This document shows, piece by piece, positions 2 through 33,885 of a stretch of 33,988 bases of DNA. A program made the position numbers and the translations under genes. The stretch lies in assembly GCF_001194135.2 (NCBI RefSeq), contig NC_068985.1:61603836-61637823 (forward strand). Reading direction: 5' to 3'. The stretch is from Octopus bimaculoides. Taxonomy: Eukaryota. A model generated the notes under the pieces. That model saw only the letters and a list, made by a program, of their open reading frames with translations. It had not been told where the DNA came from and did no database searches. Each line of letters starts with the position of its first letter. Position 1 is the first letter of the stretch.

Positions 2-335
2 TCAAAATACAAAGACCTGGAAATAGAGATAACTCGAATGTGGAATCTAAAAACAGAAACAATTCCTATCATAGTAGGTGCCTTAGGTATAATAAAAAAA
101 TATTCAGACAAATACATAACAAAAACATCAGGACTCACAAATATATATAACATACAGAAAATTGCATTACTGGGTACTGCACACATTCTACGCAAAACAC
201 TTTCAGTACAGTAAACATAAGAGCACCACAGCAAACCGCAGCACATACCCAAGGCGCACAGAGCTGCGCTCGGTAGTGAAGTGAAAGCACGTTATAAAAA
301 TAAAACTACTGAACAATAATAATGATAATAATAAT
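2..335 (+). mobile_element. 3' end of an R4/Dong-like (restriction-like endonuclease) non-LTR retrotransposon, copy 1, with 3' UTR and (AAT)n tail
   Basis: Frame 2 (2-214) is open: SKYKDLEIEITRMWNLKTETIPIIVGALG...IQKIALLGTAHILRKTLSVQ*, the typical C-terminus of R4/Dong-type ORFs. It is followed by ~100 bp of UTR and an AAT-rich tail at 314-335. The ORF runs off the left edge, so the element may be intact upstream. Confidence 0.88.
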
Positions 336-348
336 CACATGTAAGTAA

Positions 349-1020
349 GTGTAGCAAACAAACGAAACTATCTCACATGTAAGTGTAGAAAACTGTTCCA
401 AAAGTGTTACAAAAGGAGACACGATAACTAAGTTTGACGAAGTTTGTTCACTGGAGTCTGTGTGAAAGGTACGTCCTGGAAAGAGCACAGAAGTGGTACG
501 AACATGAGAACAATTAATATAAGAGTTTGTAGGATTTTACAATCCAATGTGAATCCTTAATTGATACTCGGAGACCATACAATATTGTGGCTGATAAAAA
601 GAAAAAGGTAAGTAAGGTCATAAATATTGCCATGCTTGAGGATGCACGCGTAGGTGACAAAAAGCTAGAAAAGGTGGAAAAATACAAATTCTAGAAGACG
701 AAATTGCATGACTGTGCGCAATGAGGACAGTGACTGTTATCCCAGTAATTGTAGGGACACCCGGAGCAATAACAACCAAGTTCGAGAAATATGTCGGAGA
801 AACTGGAATTGATATGAGGGCTGAGTATGCCCCCCCCCAACTGCACTATTGGGGACAGCTAGGATTTTGAGATTGGTACTTCAGTGTTGAGTATCTTCCA
901 TGATACTTAGGATCCAAGTACCAGGTCTTATAATTTGTGAAAAGAACCCTGTGATCTCTGACAAAATCAATTAGAGCAAGTAAGACCGAGGGCTCTGAGA
1001 AGTAAAATATAATGATGATA
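349..1020 (+). mobile_element. Decayed 3' fragment of a second, diverged R4/Dong-like element (zinc knuckle + endonuclease)
   Basis: Manual translation with stops and frameshifts: ETISH..., KRRHDN, VHWSLCERY..KWYEHE, DFTIQC..TRRPYNIV.DKK, EKVEKY, VIPVIVG..G, ALLGTARILRLVLQC* (TGA 888-890). Ends in ATAATGATGATA at ~1009-1020. Confidence 0.85.
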
Positions 1021-1057: not shown

Positions 1058-2023
1058 TTACCTACCTTTAGCTGAAGGCAATATTGGTGGAAAGGAAATA
1101 TTATGCATGTAATTTGTATGCTTCGATGATGGAACTCCTTTTCTGTCAGAATGTGATTTTGGAAATTTGAAATTTCCATATTTCCCATTTAACCCATTTA
1201 ATATTTTTACTTTAGTCTTATATTTTCCATTTAATAGTTTTACTTTAGTCTTATATACTTTGCGTGTTTTAGCGACCGGTAACGTTTTGTTGTCAATAAT
1301 TATGGTTTGTTTCACAATAATCGTTGTAAAGGTTTTATCTTTTTTTCTTTTTTTAGCTGTTAAACCTAATGTGGATTTCATTTCTTTTAGGACGCTCTTT
1401 TTTAACTTTTCCTTCTTCTCCTTTTCTACGTCGTCTTCTACTTCCTCATCCTCTTCCTCTTTATCAGCCTCAAATTTTTCTTCATCTACCTCCTCTTCAT
1501 CATCATAAACATCCTTGTCTACATTGGACTTCTTACCTTGATATTTATACGATATAACTATTTTCGACATATTCTTACGATTGTCTTCATCATTACGAAC
1601 TGTTACATCCGTTTGTTTTCCTTTGATTAACTTAGCAATGGATTTTAACAAATTATTTCCCACATCTGAGACGTTATTATGCATTATATTACTAGTTTTA
1701 TTGCCATTTCCAGTTCTTACTATTTTAGTTTTCTTAGTCAAATTTCTTACTTGTGAAACTAATTTATCTATAGAGTCTTCATCGTGTAAAGTCTTCCTTT
1801 TTTGTCTCCAAAATTTAAGTTTATTTTGAGAATTCCCTAGAATAAATTTCCGCAGAAAAGATGTAAATGTCTCCGCAAATAATAATATCCTTTTATTCAA
1901 CGAAGAACTCGAGATATCCGTTTTATTGTCCACTTTGTAATGGGCGTTTGATGAAGGCAAGCAGCTCTGAGATACAAAACTGTTACACATCACAAAATAT
2001 ATTAAAAGCCAGATCGGTATCAT
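1058..2023 (-). CDS. Putative secreted Lys-rich protein with acidic central block (orphan, 321 aa)
   Basis: 966-bp stop-free ORF in AT-rich DNA. ATG context ACTAACA-ATG has A at -3. Hydrophobic N-terminus MIPIWLLIYFVMCNSFVSQS resembles a signal peptide. Contains a D/E block (21 of 30 residues), dibasic clusters and no TE motif. A TATA-like element lies ~170 bp upstream. The family is not recognised, and the 3' end may be spliced. Confidence 0.75.
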   Translation of the reverse strand: MIPIWLLIYFVMCNSFVSQSCLPSSNAHYKVDNKTDISSSSLNKRILLFAETFTSFLRKFILGNSQNKLKFWRQKRKTLHDEDSIDKLVSQVRNLTKKTKIVRTGNGNKTSNIMHNNVSDVGNNLLKSIAKLIKGKQTDVTVRNDEDNRKNMSKIVISYKYQGKKSNVDKDVYDDEEEVDEEKFEADKEEEDEEVEDDVEKEKKEKLKKSVLKEMKSTLGLTAKKRKKDKTFTTIIVKQTIIIDNKTLPVAKTRKVYKTKVKLLNGKYKTKVKILNGLNGKYGNFKFPKSHSDRKGVPSSKHTNYMHNISFPPILPSAKGR

Positions 2024-2190
2024 TGTTAGTATTTATGACTTTTTACAGTATCCCATCGAGATTGGCTTCAAGCTATCAGATTAAACAGGTCGACTAAATG
2101 ATTGACATGTTTTTGCTGTGATGTCATAGTACCATGACGCCAAAATCTCGTTACTTCACGAGATTTCGGAAGCCATGACAATTGATAGTG

Positions 2191-2198
2191 CTTATATA
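2191..2198 (-). promoter_or_regulatory. Candidate TATA box (TATATAAG) for the 321-aa gene
   Basis: Plus strand CTTATATA reads TATATAAG on minus, ~170 bp upstream of the ATG. In AT-rich DNA this could be chance. Confidence 0.3.
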
Positions 2199-2599
2199 CG
2201 TAAATATCTGAATGACTTCCACTTTTGCTAAAAGTAGAAATGGATATGAAATATTTTATAATTTTACGTACGAATAAAAGATAATTTAATATGATCCTAG
2301 CCCAAGTTTGAAACATACAACAATAGCAACAACGGCACCCCACCACTTTACAATAGAAATCTCAGCAATTAAGTAATCAGTAAATTAATATTCCACTCAC
2401 ACTTAATTCTCGAACAATTCCAATTAGCAGTGAGTTGCACTGAAGAATCAATTGAATGAAACACAACATTTAGCCTTGATAGAACTGTATATGCAAATAA
2501 AACTTTCTTATATATCTTTATTCTAAAATGGCGACATAATACTTTAAATTTTATGTCTGCAAAGTCTATGATTTTAAGTAAATATTCAGCCAAGATCTT

Positions 2600-9801: not shown

Positions 9802-10114
9802 TTCTTGCACCGCCTTTTCTGGTATCTAACGCCTTTCCTGCTGAAATAATAATGGAAACATTCTGAAAATAGAATAAAGTAAACAGAACAAGAAAGATAG
9901 TTGAAAAGATGAAAAATGAAGTAAATACAATAAAATATGGATTGTATTAGAACTGGAGTTGAAATCTAAACCAGAAGGTGACTTGCGTCAAAGATTTTGA
10001 TATATGTATGTGCATGTGGGTGTTCATGTATGTATGTATGTACGTATGTATAATTTTCCTTTACGGTAAAACATTGCAAATAGCTGTTTTTATTAATTTT
10101 TGTATATATATATG

Positions 10115-13134: not shown

Positions 13135-14130
13135 ATATAATTCGGGCATTTAATGCAGTAGATCAAATTTCTGCTTTTGCAGTTCATATCTGCATTTACG
13201 AAAATCTTTCCATTTTTTTGTTCTAATGGATCTACCAGTAAGCATGTATTGACACATTCCACATTTGTTATCATTACTCTTGGTTTGATTAGTTATTATG
13301 TTCTTAATTTTTCACTTTGTTTCATGATTGGCAAATTTGTTTTGATGATGTTAACGATGTTTTAGTGATGCGGATTATGTTACTAGAAAATGTACTGTGT
13401 CCTGCTGATGGGTTCGTTTTTCTCGTGTTGTCCTAAGTTGTTCTCTAGCTATCTCTTTTGCTCGTTGCATGCTATTTTCTATAAGTAGGAAAGGGTAATT
13501 TTGCTTGAGCAGAAATCCTTTGAGTTCTATAAGTCTTACGTTCTTGGTATTTAGACCATCTACTATAGTACAAATTTTCCTGGCTAGACAGTGCGGAATG
13601 TTGCGTTTTGTGTGTGTTGGGTGGCATGATTTGAAATTTAGGTACTGGTGTGTATCTGTGCTTTTGTAATAAATATCAGTTGTGATTGTGGTGTTGTTTT
13701 TAATTACCATTATGTCAAGAAATGGTAATTGTGTGTTGCTCATTTCTCTTGTGAATTTAAGACTAAGATGTAGATTGTTGAGGAGGGTGCTGAATTCTTC
13801 CAGATTTTCTAAGGATTTGGTCTAAATTAGAAAACAATCATCGAAATATCTTTTCCATGTGTCCTCTATATGTCTTCTAATAGTCATGCTGTAGTTCTCT
13901 TCAATTTTTTATATATAGGTTTGTTCCAAGTATCCCAATATTGAGTTCGTGAAAACTGGAGCAAATCGCATCCCCATAGATGTGCCTCGAATTTGGATAT
14001 AGGTTTTACCGTAGAAAAGGTATGTATTTTTTCTAGGATGAAGCTGACCGCGTCTAGTATGAAAATTACTGTAAATTTGCTGGGGATCGCTTCTCTGTGT
14101 TTCCCGACCCTTTGTTTTATTGAATGCAGA
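13135..14130 (-). mobile_element. Penelope-like element, decayed RT core, thumb and start of GIY-YIG
   Basis: KHREAIPSKF..FIL, QIRGTSMG.RFAPVF, WKRYFDDCFL (YFDD at 13837-13848), LKFT..., LPFLDIMV...DIYYKSTDTHQYLNFKSCHP..KRNIP, then MNCKSRNLIYCIKCPN. Several frameshifts and stops. Confidence 0.93.
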
Positions 14131-15142: not shown

Positions 15143-16466
15143 TTAGGTCATCCCGTTCTGTCCGAATTATGAATAAAGAAAGCAAGTGATGAAATGTTAT
15201 ATTTAACTGAAATTTAATTATCAATGTACTTTCCCTCATTATCTATGACTTTCTTCCATCTATTTACAAGTTTTTTAATCCCATCAATGTAAAACTCTTT
15301 TGGTTTCAAAGCGAAGAACTCTGAAATGTCAGTTTCGACCTCCTCTTGTATTGCGAAAGCTATGTCCCCCAAATGCTTCTGTAAACTACGAAACAAACGA
15401 TAGTCTGAAGGAGCAAGGTTGGGAGATTAAGGTGGATGAGAAATTTCTTCCCAGCCAAGCTCTTCGATCTTCTGTGATATGATCTTTGCAGTGTGGGGTC
15501 GTACATTGTCCTGATGAAACATCCCTCCTTTTCGATTTACTAAAGCGGGTCTTTTTTTCTTCAAAGCTTGGTTCAAACGCTCTAATTGCTGACAGTAGAC
15601 TTTGAGCATTGATTGTTGCATTAGGTGGTAACAGTTCAAAGTGAATTACTCCTTTGCAATCCTACCAGATAGAGAGAAGAACCTTTTTCTCATGAAGTTC
15701 CCTTCTGGGTTGTGCTTGAGCTTTTTCCCTTTTACCAAGCCACTGTTTACGNNNNNNNNNNNNNNNNNNNNNNNNNNNNNNNNNNNNNNNNNNNNNNNNN
15801 NNNNNNNNNNNNNNNNNNNNNNNNNNNNNNNNNNNNNNNNNNNNNNNNNNNNNNNNNNNNNNNNNNNNNNNNNNNNNNNNNNNNNNNNNNNNNNNNNNNN
15901 NNNNNNNNNNNNNNNNNNNNNNNNNNNNNNNNNNNNNNNNNNNNNNNNNNNNNNNNNNNNNNNNNNNNNNNNNNNNNNNNNNNNNNNNNNNNNNNNNNNN
16001 NNNNNNNNNNNNNNNNNNNNNNNNNNNNNNNNNNNNNNNNNNNNNNNNNNNNNNNNNNNNNNNNNNNNNNNNNNNNNNNNNNNNNNNNNCCTGTTCGATC
16101 TTCATCTTCAAGGCTGAAATCTCCACTTCTGAATTTTGCAAACCATTTTCTGCAAGTTCTTTCATTCAAGCATTCTTTCCCGTAAATTGTGTGTATGTTT
16201 CGAGTCGCTTCGGCTGTAGAGTTTCCTTTCTTGTACTCATAAAGCATTATGTGCCTTAAAAAGCTCTTTGGATACTTCCATGTTAGAAAGGGTTTTAATC
16301 AAAGAAATTTTAATTCTATTATTCTGTAAAATAAAATTTAATTAGTTTTAAATGTACATAAATGCATAAAAGTAATTTTTAATTCCATTAGACATTCTAA
16401 AATACTATTAAATTTCTTTCAATTTTAAAAAAGGTAAAATCGAACAGAACTTATGGGATGATCTGA
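15143..16466 (-). mobile_element. mariner (DD34D) transposon, copy A, defective, gap in the middle
   Basis: TA-flanked TIRs: TTAGGTCATCCC[4-bp deletion]GTTCTGTCCGA at 15143 and TCGAACAGAACTTATGGGATGATCTGA ending 16466. Transposase remnant 15214-16281 with HQDN and SPNLAPSDY; frameshift near the start (extra A at ~16258) and an in-frame stop before SPNL. Confidence 0.96.
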
Positions 16467-27206: not shown

Positions 27207-27942
27207 ACACGCACGCACTACAATGCAAACATTCGTACATTTCTCTATGATCATATCTCATTTCTTTAAGTATGATCTACTTTGATGCATCTGTCTCTAT
27301 CAAACTCTGTCTTTTTACTCATAACAAAGTCTGGCTGGCGTCACAACTTCATGCTTTGCAACCGGATGTTAGATTTTGTTTTTTACTAAATTGCTCCCCG
27401 TATTTTCCCGGAACGGTTTCCAGGAGTCAAGCTTCTTTCTGTCTAGAATTCTTTCTTCGAACTCAAGCCGTGATTCAGTTTCTCTGCCCCAATTCCTTTT
27501 TTTAAGTATTGGCCATAAAATTGTGACCCTTGAGAAAATTAAGTATTTTCACTTTTGATTTGTCCCGCCACCATGATGTCGCATCCTCTTACAAAAGCAA
27601 ACAAAATATCTGCGTAAATATTTGGATTAACAAAAACTAACTTATGGTTTCTGAAGATTTAACATCAACTTTATATTATCTTCTGTATTTGTTAGTTTTA
27701 TTGTTTCCATTTTCGTATAATTGTTTCATACTGATAGCGGGGTGTGTAACACTAAACAGATCATACTGTTCTTTACAGACAAAATGTCTGCTTTTTGCCA
27801 CATATGTAATTTATCATCTCATTTCTGTTGTTGGAGAACAGCAGACAACAGTACAGAATAAGTATACATCGTTGTCAGTGGTGAAGTTTTCAATTAATTC
27901 AAGTTTTATCAAATTACTTCATTTATAGAGTATTTAATCAAA

Positions 27943-30357: not shown

Positions 30358-31637
30358 TCAGGTCATCCCATAAGTTCTGTCCGAATTTTGAATAAAGAAA
30401 AAAAGTGATCAAATGTTATATTCAATTGAAATTTAATCAGCAATGTACTTTCCCTCATTATCTATGACTTCCTTCCATCTATTTACAAGCTTTTTAATCC
30501 CATCAGTGTAAAACTCTTTGGTTTCAAAGTGAAGAATTCTGAAATGTCAGTTTCGACCTCCTCCTGGCTCGTGAAAGTTATGTCCCCCAAATGATCCTGT
30601 AAACTATAAAACAAATGGTAGTCTGAAGGAGCAAGGTTGGGAGAATAAGGTGGATGAGGAATTTCTTCCCAGCCAAGCTCTTCGATCTTCTGTGATATGA
30701 TCTTTGCAGTGTGGGGTCGTACATTGTCCTGATGAAACATCATACCTTTTCGATTCACTAAAGCGGGTCTTTTTTTCTTCAAAGCTTGGTTCAAACGCTC
30801 TAATTGCTGACAGTAGACTTGAGCATTGATTGTTGCATTAGGTGGTAATAATTCAAAGTGAATTACTCCTTTGCAATCCCACCAGATACAGAGAAGAACT
30901 TTTTTTCCACGAAGTTCCCTTCTGGGTTGTGCTTCAGCTTTTTCCCTTTTATCAAACCACTGTTTACGACGTTTAACACTTCGATAGAAGATCCATTTTT
31001 CGTTACCTGTCACAAGTCTATCCAAAAAGGGTGAAATGCGTTCACGAGAATTGAGAGAAGAGCAGATGTCAACCCGGGATTTGCGGTTGCTTTCGGACAA
31101 TTCATGAGGCACCCATTTTCCAAGTTTAGGAACCTTTCCAAGTTATTCAAGATGACGATGAACAGTTGTATGGTTTGAACTAAGCTTTATTGCCAATTCT
31201 TCACCTGAAAATGCAGGATTTTCTTCAAGTAATGCTTCAAGGAGCTTATCATCATACTCAACTGGACGCCCTGTTCGATTTTCAAGGCTGAAATCTCCAC
31301 TTCTGAATTTTGCAAACCATCTTCTGCAAGTTTTTTCATTCAAGCATTCTTTTCCATAAACTGAGTGTATGTTTCGAGTCGCTTCGGCTGCAAAGTTTCC
31401 TTTTTTGTACTCATAAAGCATTATGTGCCTTAAAAGCTCTTTGGATACTTCCATGTTAGAAAGGGTATTTTAATCAAAGAAATTTTATTCTATTATTCCG
31501 TAAAATATTTAATTAGTTTTAAATGTACACAAATACATAAAAATAATTCTTAATTCCATTAGACATTCTAAAATACTATTAAATTTCATTCAATTTTAAA
31601 AAAGGTTAAATCGGACAGAACTTATAGGATGACCTGA
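30358..31637 (-). mobile_element. mariner (DD34D) transposon, copy B, full length (1280 bp), defective
   Basis: 27-bp TIRs TCAGGTCATCCCATAAGTTCTGTCCGA (30358-30384) and TCGGACAGAACTTATAGGATGACCTGA (31611-31637), one mismatch. Right flank is TA, left flank is CA. Confidence 0.97.
30433..31454 (-). pseudogene. mariner transposase pseudogene
   Basis: HTH region, WVPHEL, VTGNEKW (first catalytic D replaced by N), HQDN, YSPNLAPSDY. Premature stop at 31143-31145 and a frameshift near 30520; the native end GKYIAD* is at 30433. Confidence 0.95.
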
Positions 31638-33126: not shown

Positions 33127-33885
33127 AAAGATAGATATGACTAGTTTACGGGGTTACTCTGGATTTCACGTCCATAAAGCGCTTAGCTTTTTCAGCGTTT
33201 CTTCAGACTCCAGGCCTGATGTCTCATACACTAGTATTAACGCTACCGGTGCCAGTACAAACACAAACACCAACATCAACAGCACCAGCACAACCAACAG
33301 CGGTAGTAGCAGCGTCAACATCAACAGAAACAACATTGCCAACACCCGCATATCGGATGTTCCGGGAACACGTTCAAGCAACGCCTCTCCAACCACAGAT
33401 CCTCTTTCAGGATCCCGGAAACGAGATACTCTACGTCCTTAACCAGCCATATATGGCCGCTAAAAGACGACGGACTCCACACGTAATATCAGGAAAGAAC
33501 GTAGAAAATTCAGGCCTCTACATAAATAGGACCAAGCGTTGTAAACTATGCATAACCGAACTGACGGCGATAGTAAAGGACTCCTTCGACCCGGAGAAAA
33601 TCCTTAACTCCGAGACGGAAGTCTTCAGACCCTGCTTGCATTTTAGAAAATCTCTGCTGTCGTCCTGGTATCCACAGGGTATCCACAGGGTCAATTACGA
33701 ATAACAGTCAAAGGGAGACAATCCTTTGTCGACATTGAGTAACGAAGTCGTTTCCTCCCCCGTTTTCTAGATAAGCCACTTACAAGAGAGTCCATAGGCC
33801 AAGGGTTTGAAGAAACGTTGTAAATCTAAGCGCTTTGTGGACGTAAAACCCAGGGTAACCCCATATACCGGTCATATCTATCTTT
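33127..33885 (+). mobile_element. Penelope-like 3' fragment with ~90-bp inverted terminal arms
   Basis: 33480-33704 encodes YINRTKRCKLCITE...ILNSETEVFRPCLHFRK, a PLE GIY-YIG C-terminus. 33127-33217 is an inverted copy of 33796-33885. Confidence 0.75.

Follow-up and report, generated by a model that had tools for sequence, protein, structure and literature searches.

LOC106871967 of Octopus bimaculoides, a two-exon octopod-restricted gene with features suggestive of a processed secretory precursor

Precursors processed by proprotein convertases include prohormones and the precursors of neuropeptides and growth factors; that of the Aplysia egg-laying hormone also contains an acidic peptide. In cephalopod genomes, lineage-restricted genes of unassigned role are numerous and taxonomically restricted secreted precursors are common. 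The present work deals with an open reading frame (ORF) of 321 codons, starting with ATG and coding for 321 amino acids (aa), located at positions 1058-2023 of the minus strand in a stretch of 33,988 nucleotides (nt) of the Octopus bimaculoides genome (hereafter, the window), which sits on chromosome record CM046605.1. An initial annotation, made from the sequence alone, had read this ORF as a lineage-specific processed secretory precursor of a family that it did not recognise. The ORF belongs to a real gene, LOC106871967, which is single-copy, restricted to octopods and made up of two coding exons; the ORF corresponds to the first and larger of them. The product, judged by analogy, would in its mode of action come closest to a prohormone-type precursor that is processed by convertases and contains an acidic spacer.

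The octopod protein shares with the convertase-processed precursors a signal-like N-terminus, conserved R-x-K-R sites and an acidic spacer. In addition, its best-conserved segment adjoins a putative cleavage site, the remainder being poorly conserved and, by prediction, disordered. However, sequence searches reveal no similarity to known precursors of this kind, and the protein has neither Gly-Lys-Arg amidation signals nor a Cys framework nor repeated copies of short peptides. The granins (chromogranin/secretogranin) resemble it in being secreted (a prediction in the octopod case), disordered and rich in dibasic sites and long acidic runs, and the orthologue of Argonauta hians has an isoelectric point (pI) of 5.1. 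In contrast to granins, the Octopus proteins are much shorter and strongly basic (pI 9.4-9.8). Membership of the granin family was rejected, given the pI values of 9.8 (O. bimaculoides) and 5.1 (Argonauta) and the lack of any granin signature in Pfam.

Residues 1-319 of the ORF are 100% identical (tblastn) to residues 1-319 of O. bimaculoides XP_014774242.1 (LOC106871967, UniProt A0A0L8H9M6), a protein of 408 aa annotated as "uncharacterized protein"; the gene is therefore already annotated but uncharacterised, and no literature on LOC106871967 was found. The chance of finding 321 stop-free codons, given the A+T-rich base composition of the ORF itself, is about 1e-13. The initial annotation had treated the ORF as a complete protein: it is real and intact, but its last two codons (G and R) and its stop are intronic, coding exon 1 ending at position 1066 of the window. 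Exon 2, the terminal one, codes for 89 aa and falls outside the window, some 11.7 kb past its left edge. The two elements that define the end of exon 1 are the following:

1066..2023, minus strand: coding exon 1 of LOC106871967 (codons 1-319 and the first base of codon 320; 100% match by tblastn)
1058..1065, minus strand: 5' splice donor GTAGGTAA of a phase-1 intron, from which the closing G-R-stop of the ORF is read

Orthologues were found in Octopus sinensis, Octopus vulgaris, an outgroup octopod and Argonauta hians:

Octopus sinensis: isoform X1, 410 aa; isoform X2, 333 aa, named "DNA ligase 1-like", with an alternative last exon
Octopus vulgaris: CAI9722302.1, with an alternative 5' structure
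Outgroup octopod: protein P0003, 307 aa, from a Logan contig of run SRR11869384
Argonauta hians: GAB1602328.1, 323 aa, found by HMMER profile search

The Logan contig was judged to be genomic because it is collinear with the flanks of the locus. The donor AAAG/GTAGGTAA (the slash marks the splice point) shows no difference among O. bimaculoides, O. vulgaris and the outgroup octopod, and Argonauta has G/GTAGGTTAA (G/GTAGGT) at the homologous position and in the same phase. The Argonauta gene is composed of the same two coding exons, with the same phase-1 intron and a near-identical acceptor tract. These shared exons, intron phase, donor and acceptor tract establish orthology, and we regard the gene structure and orthology of LOC106871967 as practically certain. 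The single coding intron varies widely in length: it measures about 660 nt in A. hians, whereas the introns of O. bimaculoides and O. vulgaris reach about 12.8 kb and 18.5 kb, respectively. This 20-30-fold enlargement with respect to Argonauta, in which the splice-site sequences have been retained, is presumably due to repeats.

A HMMER profile run against 1.84 billion representative proteins added a single relative, Argonauta hians GAB1602328.1. Neither this search nor word-seeded searches of 5.8 billion proteins detected relatives outside Octopoda, and a profile including Argonauta found no further relatives among the 5.8 billion proteins. As far as these databases can show, the family appears to be restricted to octopods, in agreement with the lineage-specific character first proposed for the protein. 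Only one copy of the gene is present in the compared loci, which add up to approximately 140 kb, and it is likewise single-copy in the protein databases, with one cluster per species. In Pfam, the ORF, the 408-aa protein and the Argonauta orthologue only gave sub-threshold compositional matches (CDC45, with 16 bits against a cut-off of 34 bits, TTI1 and PPP4R2), and sequence and profile searches of the PDB gave no meaningful relative. Thus, the family that the initial annotation could not place has no Pfam or PDB match, and its relatives are limited to octopods. No known antimicrobial peptide (AMP) or matrix domain was found in the Pfam scans, and the mature part contains one Cys. The AlphaFold2 models have a mean predicted local distance difference test (pLDDT) of 35 for the Octopus target and 41 for the Argonauta target and show scattered helices only; according to these models, the protein is probably largely disordered.

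The protein can be divided into the following segments, identities being those to the Argonauta orthologue:

1964..2023, minus strand: signal-peptide-like N-terminus, residues 1-20 (h-region I2-M12; small residues at -3/-1 before C21)
1793..1888, minus strand: amphipathic helix motif, residues 46-77, first copy of a 25-aa repeat, ending in the furin-type site R73-Q-K-R76; over residues 46-80 (ETF.S..RK.I.G.S.N...R.KR), 40% identity, closing in R-Q/S-K-R
Residues 81-116: variable segment, 11% identity
1529..1675, minus strand: conserved core, residues 117-165, with a helix, a KQTDVT strand pair and the sequons N117 and N151
1430..1519, minus strand: acidic block, residues 169-198, with 21 D/E out of 30 (DKDVYDDEEEVDEEKFEADKEEEDEEVEDD), the densest acidic window of 30 aa; over residues 166-200, 37% identity, longer in Argonauta
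1355..1423, minus strand: basic amphipathic helix KEKKEKLKKSVLKEMKSTLGLT, residues 201-223, 48% identity
1067..1354, minus strand: low-complexity Lys-rich tail, residues 224-319, a linker with 9% identity
Residues 320-343 (exon 2): second copy of the helix motif, 42% identity, closing in R-V/F-K-R-R
Residues 344-408 (exon 2, outside the window): C-terminal peptide, 66% identity, the most conserved segment

Several positions are invariant from Octopus to Argonauta: WLLIYFV in the N-terminus, ETF..RK.I.G.S.N...R.KR in the first helix motif, and KQTDVT, N-x-S and SK.VI..K in the core. The core shows 35% identity and two conserved sequons, and is modelled by AlphaFold2, with low confidence, as a helix and a hairpin. 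The basic helix, of pattern KEKLK..LK.M.S..G.T, is, in the Argonauta model, alone in reaching pLDDT values of 63-74. The D/E content first described for the 30-aa acidic block is correct.

Coding constraint was estimated by pairwise Nei-Gojobori counting among three octopod sequences, without transition/transversion correction. The overall ratio of nonsynonymous to synonymous substitution rates (dN/dS) is 0.47-0.55, so that coding constraint across octopods is weak, and the excess of synonymous changes has P = 0.004-0.04. Constraint differs among segments:

Residues 25-80: dN/dS about 0.13 against the outgroup
Residues 80-170: dN/dS 0.9-1.8
Acidic block: dN/dS 0.05-0.2
Lys-rich tail: dN/dS 0.75-0.9

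Purifying selection on a coding gene is real but weak and uneven. The repeats and transposon remnants that surround the ORF, its low-complexity and domain-free sequence and the high dN/dS of two of its segments could be taken to mean that it is non-functional or derived from a transposable element (TE), being open by chance or in an early state of decay. However, four Octopus-clade genomes and Argonauta have kept it open, along with its splice sites and phase; all of its indels (8/8) are in frame, being multiples of three; and some segments have dN/dS values of 0.05-0.2. It is also single-copy in the loci and databases mentioned above and contains no TE domain, although mariner remnants are readily detected elsewhere in the window. 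Both the absence of a TE match in Pfam and the conservation of the ORF in related species fit what had been supposed at the outset, and a non-functional or TE origin, which is hardly credible, is close to refuted.

With respect to the destination of the protein, its N-terminus MIPIWLLIYFVM is its most hydrophobic stretch (Kyte-Doolittle mean over 11 residues of 2.38; 19-residue hydropathy of 1.56), as was first noticed for residues 1-20, and the small residues S18 (-3) and S20 (-1) precede C21. There are eight N-x-S/T sequons in the O. bimaculoides protein, while 4.1 would be expected (P = 0.036), and four of them are positionally conserved to Argonauta despite changes in their neighbours (NKT/NES, NVS/NGS/NSS/NMS, NMS/NTS and NFT/NFT). 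Since both the hydrophobic N-terminus and a set of sequons are conserved, we consider it probable, on these sequence features, that the protein enters the secretory pathway.

This destination depends on where translation starts. The elements of the locus that bear on this question are the following:

About 2191-2198, minus strand: TATA box TATATAAG, 175 nt upstream of the ATG that opens the ORF (MIPIW)
2024..2200, minus strand: promoter-proximal region or 5' leader, 175 nt, 95.9% identity to the outgroup
1836..1847, minus strand: putative internal 3' splice acceptor tttattctag/GG, used by the O. vulgaris gene model, which thereby bypasses the signal peptide
27643..27729, minus strand: counterpart of the first exon of the O. 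vulgaris model, non-coding from its ATG in O. bimaculoides

If a transcript from an upstream promoter, about 26 kb away, were spliced to the internal acceptor, the product would lack the hydrophobic N-terminus and could be an intracellular, nuclear or nucleolar Lys/Glu-rich protein, in which RQKRK and KKRKK would be nuclear localisation signals and the acidic block a patch for binding histones or other basic proteins. The O. vulgaris annotation CAI9722302.1 has precisely this structure, since it maps to positions 27729-27643 of the window and then from about 1840 onwards. The DNA of the upstream exon is 98% identical to that of O. vulgaris over 181 nt and retains the donor A/GTTAGT. Moreover, the automatic NCBI name "DNA ligase 1-like" reflects a resemblance to K/E-rich nuclear proteins. 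However, the upstream exon of O. bimaculoides is interrupted by an in-frame TAA after 17 codons (MKQLYENGNNKTNKYRR followed by the stop), and the complete MIPIW ORF is also intact in O. vulgaris. Conservation of the hydrophobic N-terminus and of the sequons extends to Argonauta, the gene model of which begins with the homologous hydrophobic segment, and a conserved TATA box and leader stand directly upstream of the MIPIW ATG. Because of the upstream TAA, the intact O. vulgaris ORF, the Argonauta start and the conserved TATA box and leader, our conclusion is that the ancestral state, and the main one in use, is the proximal promoter with the MIPIW start. The O. vulgaris model devoid of a signal peptide is probably an annotation artefact, and a nuclear protein is very unlikely. 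The resemblance to DNA ligase 1 is limited to a Lys/Glu-rich low-complexity composition; unlike that enzyme, the octopod protein has no ligase domains, nor was any other nuclear domain found by Pfam. Identity with an ATP-dependent DNA ligase 1, the name carried by XP_036359016.1, was rejected for this reason, and the "DNA ligase 1-like" label of O. sinensis is probably a compositional artefact of annotation. Both the label and the O. vulgaris model merit correction.

The leader is the best-conserved DNA of the locus (95.9% against the outgroup, compared with 91% for the coding sequence and 86-88% for the flanks). It contains an inverted repeat (ATCTCGT-GAAGTA-ACGAGAT), a CGTCA half-site, a sequence similar to a cAMP response element (CRE), TGACATCA, and conserved upstream ATGs. 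A leader core of 33 nt is weakly recognisable upstream of the Argonauta gene (positions ~9860-9900 of the Argonauta contig), a marginal similarity whose score of 13 was reached by 16 of 1000 shuffles and by 2 of 63 real-sequence controls. The segment 27173-28260 (minus strand) is the best-conserved long block with respect to O. vulgaris (94.5% over 1.1 kb), especially at 27600-27780. The upstream exon region may be a non-coding alternative 5' exon, a promoter, an enhancer or another regulatory element of the same gene.

The basic sites pointed out in the initial annotation, LNKR (42-45), QKRK (74-77) and AKKRKK (223-228), are all present in the O. bimaculoides protein. Sites of the type R-x-[KR]-R occur twice, while 0.17 would be expected from composition (P ~0.01), and they are found at homologous positions in Octopus and Argonauta. 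These invariant sites are RQKR (73-76; RSKR in Argonauta) and RVKR (338-341, outside the window; RVKRR/RFKRR). Each of them closes a copy of a 25-aa helix motif, and the two motifs are homologous: hhalign gives a score of 24.3, while a column-shuffled null gives 10.2 +/- 2.0, with a maximum of 17.2. A longer internal duplication, spanning the glycosylated beta-hairpin, was also considered and rejected, as hhalign only backs the 25-column helix/R-x-K-R motif. Right after the second R-x-K-R site, identity to Argonauta is 66%, compared with 9-48% elsewhere.

Furin-type sites that close a repeated motif, together with a best-conserved segment placed after the second of them, suggest a convertase-processed precursor. 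According to this model, a cleavable N-terminal signal peptide would direct the protein to the endoplasmic reticulum, where four or more of the conserved sequons would become N-glycosylated. Furin-type proprotein convertases would then cut at the two conserved R-x-K-R sites, each of which closes one copy of the motif [FY][IL]...[ND]KLK.[WFL]R.KR[KR]. Three products would be expected: a short N-terminal amphipathic peptide of about 27-55 aa; a large, disordered and fast-evolving middle piece bearing the acidic block; and a Cys-free C-terminal peptide of 65-66 aa, encoded outside the window. In it, the conserved acidic block would act as a spacer or in sorting; the Lys-rich tail would be a recent expansion of this spacer in the Octopus lineage and would yield no mature peptide. 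Conservation is by far the strongest in the C-terminal peptide, which makes this peptide the leading candidate for the active product. This whole chain of steps, as read from the sequence, is our preferred reading, with chances that appear evenly balanced. Of the processed secretory precursor originally proposed, probable secretory entry and conserved convertase-type sites are retained, but not release at KKRKK.

The Lys-rich tail was the basis of that proposal. The 93 residues that follow KKRKK contain 18 K and 3 R, 3 D and no E, as reported, and the initial annotation likened the preceding acidic block to an anionic propiece and this tail to the cationic peptide released from it. A precursor of this kind, of the antimicrobial or toxin type, in which the acidic block would neutralise a 93-aa cationic peptide freed at AKKRKK, has in its favour the composition described, the frequency of the anionic-propiece/cationic-peptide layout among AMP precursors and the fast evolution of the tail, which would suit an immune effector. 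Like the defensin- or cathelicidin-type precursors, the Octopus protein has an acidic block and then a cationic block behind a signal-like segment. However, neither the boundary site nor the cationic block is conserved: KKRKK is replaced by EKVKK in O. vulgaris and O. sinensis and by KNLKK in the outgroup octopod, and Argonauta has a longer acidic block but no tail. The cationic block is not C-terminal, since 89 residues follow it, and the protein has no cathelin or defensin domain or Cys pattern. The hydrophobic moment predicted for the tail is unremarkable, the top amphipathic segments being found elsewhere in the protein, and its dN/dS (0.75-0.9) together with the gain and loss of repeats resembles relaxed constraint. 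The propiece-and-peptide layout was therefore abandoned, and an AMP-type precursor is highly improbable.

The history of the tail can be followed among the orthologues. In place of the 96 Lys-rich residues of O. bimaculoides, Argonauta has about 35 unrelated ones, and comparison with the Argonauta exon shows that exon 1 has expanded within its 3' end to give the Octopus tail. Indels of 1, 3, 5 and 14 codons are found in it. A tandem duplication of 33 nt (11 aa) is present at 1194-1256 (Tandem Repeats Finder: period 33, 1.9 copies, 96% match); the outgroup octopod lacks one copy of the 11-aa unit (the 14-codon gap), and Argonauta has none. On this evidence the tail is a young low-complexity expansion of the Octopus lineage that evolves nearly neutrally.

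The same features can be read in another way. The protein could be an unprocessed, secreted and glycosylated polyampholyte with a structural or adhesive role, whose blocks of opposite charge drive self-association or coacervation in mucus, in the cement of egg stalks or capsules, or in sucker or skin secretions; its basic motifs would bind polyanions and no cleavage would take place. The layout of charged blocks, the predicted disorder and the Lys-rich tail, with Tyr and Gly in an expanding 11-aa repeat, are in line with this possibility, and fast evolution and changes in repeat number are frequent in such proteins. The evidence for secretion is common to it and to the convertase-processed precursor. 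However, the tail is absent in Argonauta and the net charge of the whole protein passes from +32 (pI 9.8) in O. bimaculoides to -15 (pI 5.1) in Argonauta, so charge complementarity is not conserved. There are only about two repeat units and the gene is single-copy. Moreover, conservation is highest in the C-terminal peptide, which is non-repetitive and follows an R-x-K-R-R site. The supplements of argonaut eggcase papers (small text files, which make this a weak test) contain no sequence or identifier match. A structural polyampholyte is thus unlikely.

Coming back to the convertase-processed precursor, different observations weigh against it. The signal-like n-region has no basic residue, and the hydrophobic stretch of 16-17 uncharged residues could be a signal anchor. 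The O. vulgaris model starts in an exon about 26-31 kb upstream and skips the hydrophobic N-terminus. The enrichment in sequons is modest only, and R-x-K-R/KRK motifs in a Lys-rich protein can also be read as nuclear localisation or glycosaminoglycan-binding signals. The amidation signals, Cys framework and similarity to known prohormones that would mark such a precursor were, as said, not found in the protein. The conservation statistics are thin, because the family alignment comprises 4-5 sequences from two octopod families. Neither the searchable full texts nor the supplements of octopus and argonaut papers mention the identifiers of the gene, of the protein or of its UniProt entry, the searchable full texts also lack the peptide strings of the protein, and the exact unspliced ORF product is encoded by no public transcript contig.

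A further step would be to regard the protein as an octopod-specific secreted signalling precursor, with the C-terminal and perhaps the N-terminal peptide acting as new bioactive (hormone-, pheromone- or cytokine-like) peptides. From its sequence, this role is possible, and we propose it only tentatively; if true, the origin of the gene would postdate the separation of octopods from squids and cuttlefish. The anatomy of the gene is clear: the N-terminus is signal-like, sites for glycosylation and two sites of convertase type are conserved, and the C-terminal peptide is strongly so. Were processing to occur as outlined, an octopod-specific family of secreted peptides would be added to those known. 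The locus is also a cautionary case, in that no part of the protein is less conserved than the most striking feature of the ORF, its cationic tail, while the part likeliest to matter sits in an exon outside the window.

Besides the two coding exons, one more element of the gene has a counterpart in the window:

306..476, minus strand: counterpart of the alternative terminal exon of O. sinensis isoform X2, with the acceptor ctctttccag/G conserved

The C-terminus of O. sinensis X2, ERTLHTGSSEQT, matches positions 473-441. The O. sinensis stop after ...SSEQT is missing in O. bimaculoides, where the frame continues for about 50 codons, to position 306. This difference in frame length indicates that the C-terminus of isoform X2 is not conserved coding sequence.

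The rest of the window contains no comparable coding sequence. Other ORFs of at least 120 aa cross runs of N or microsatellites or are transposon remnants, so that the description of this ORF as the only intact long one was essentially right. The longest of the others (209 aa) is a fragment of a mariner-type transposase. Remnants of mariner/Mos1-type transposases are located at 30483-31112 (minus strand) and 15747-16247 (minus strand), the second one entering a run of N; their Pfam matches are Transposase_1 (E = 1e-29) and HTH_48 (E = 8e-18). Two ORFs, at 13375-13743 (minus strand, 122 aa) and 33219-33704 (plus strand, 161 aa), are non-repetitive and have no Pfam match. The 122-aa ORF carries the motif YKSTDTHQYLNFKSCHP, which may resemble one of retroelement-associated ORFs of marine invertebrates. 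Runs of N, which are masked stretches or assembly gaps, are found at approximately 6.4-6.75, 10.3-10.9, 15.75-16.1, 17.2-17.7, 21.3-22.0, 24.9-25.4, 26.95-27.2 and 32.2-32.4 kb and are bordered by microsatellites of the (CA/TG)n and (TATG/CATA)n types. These runs and microsatellites account for most of the spurious long ORFs in the mechanical ORF list of the window.

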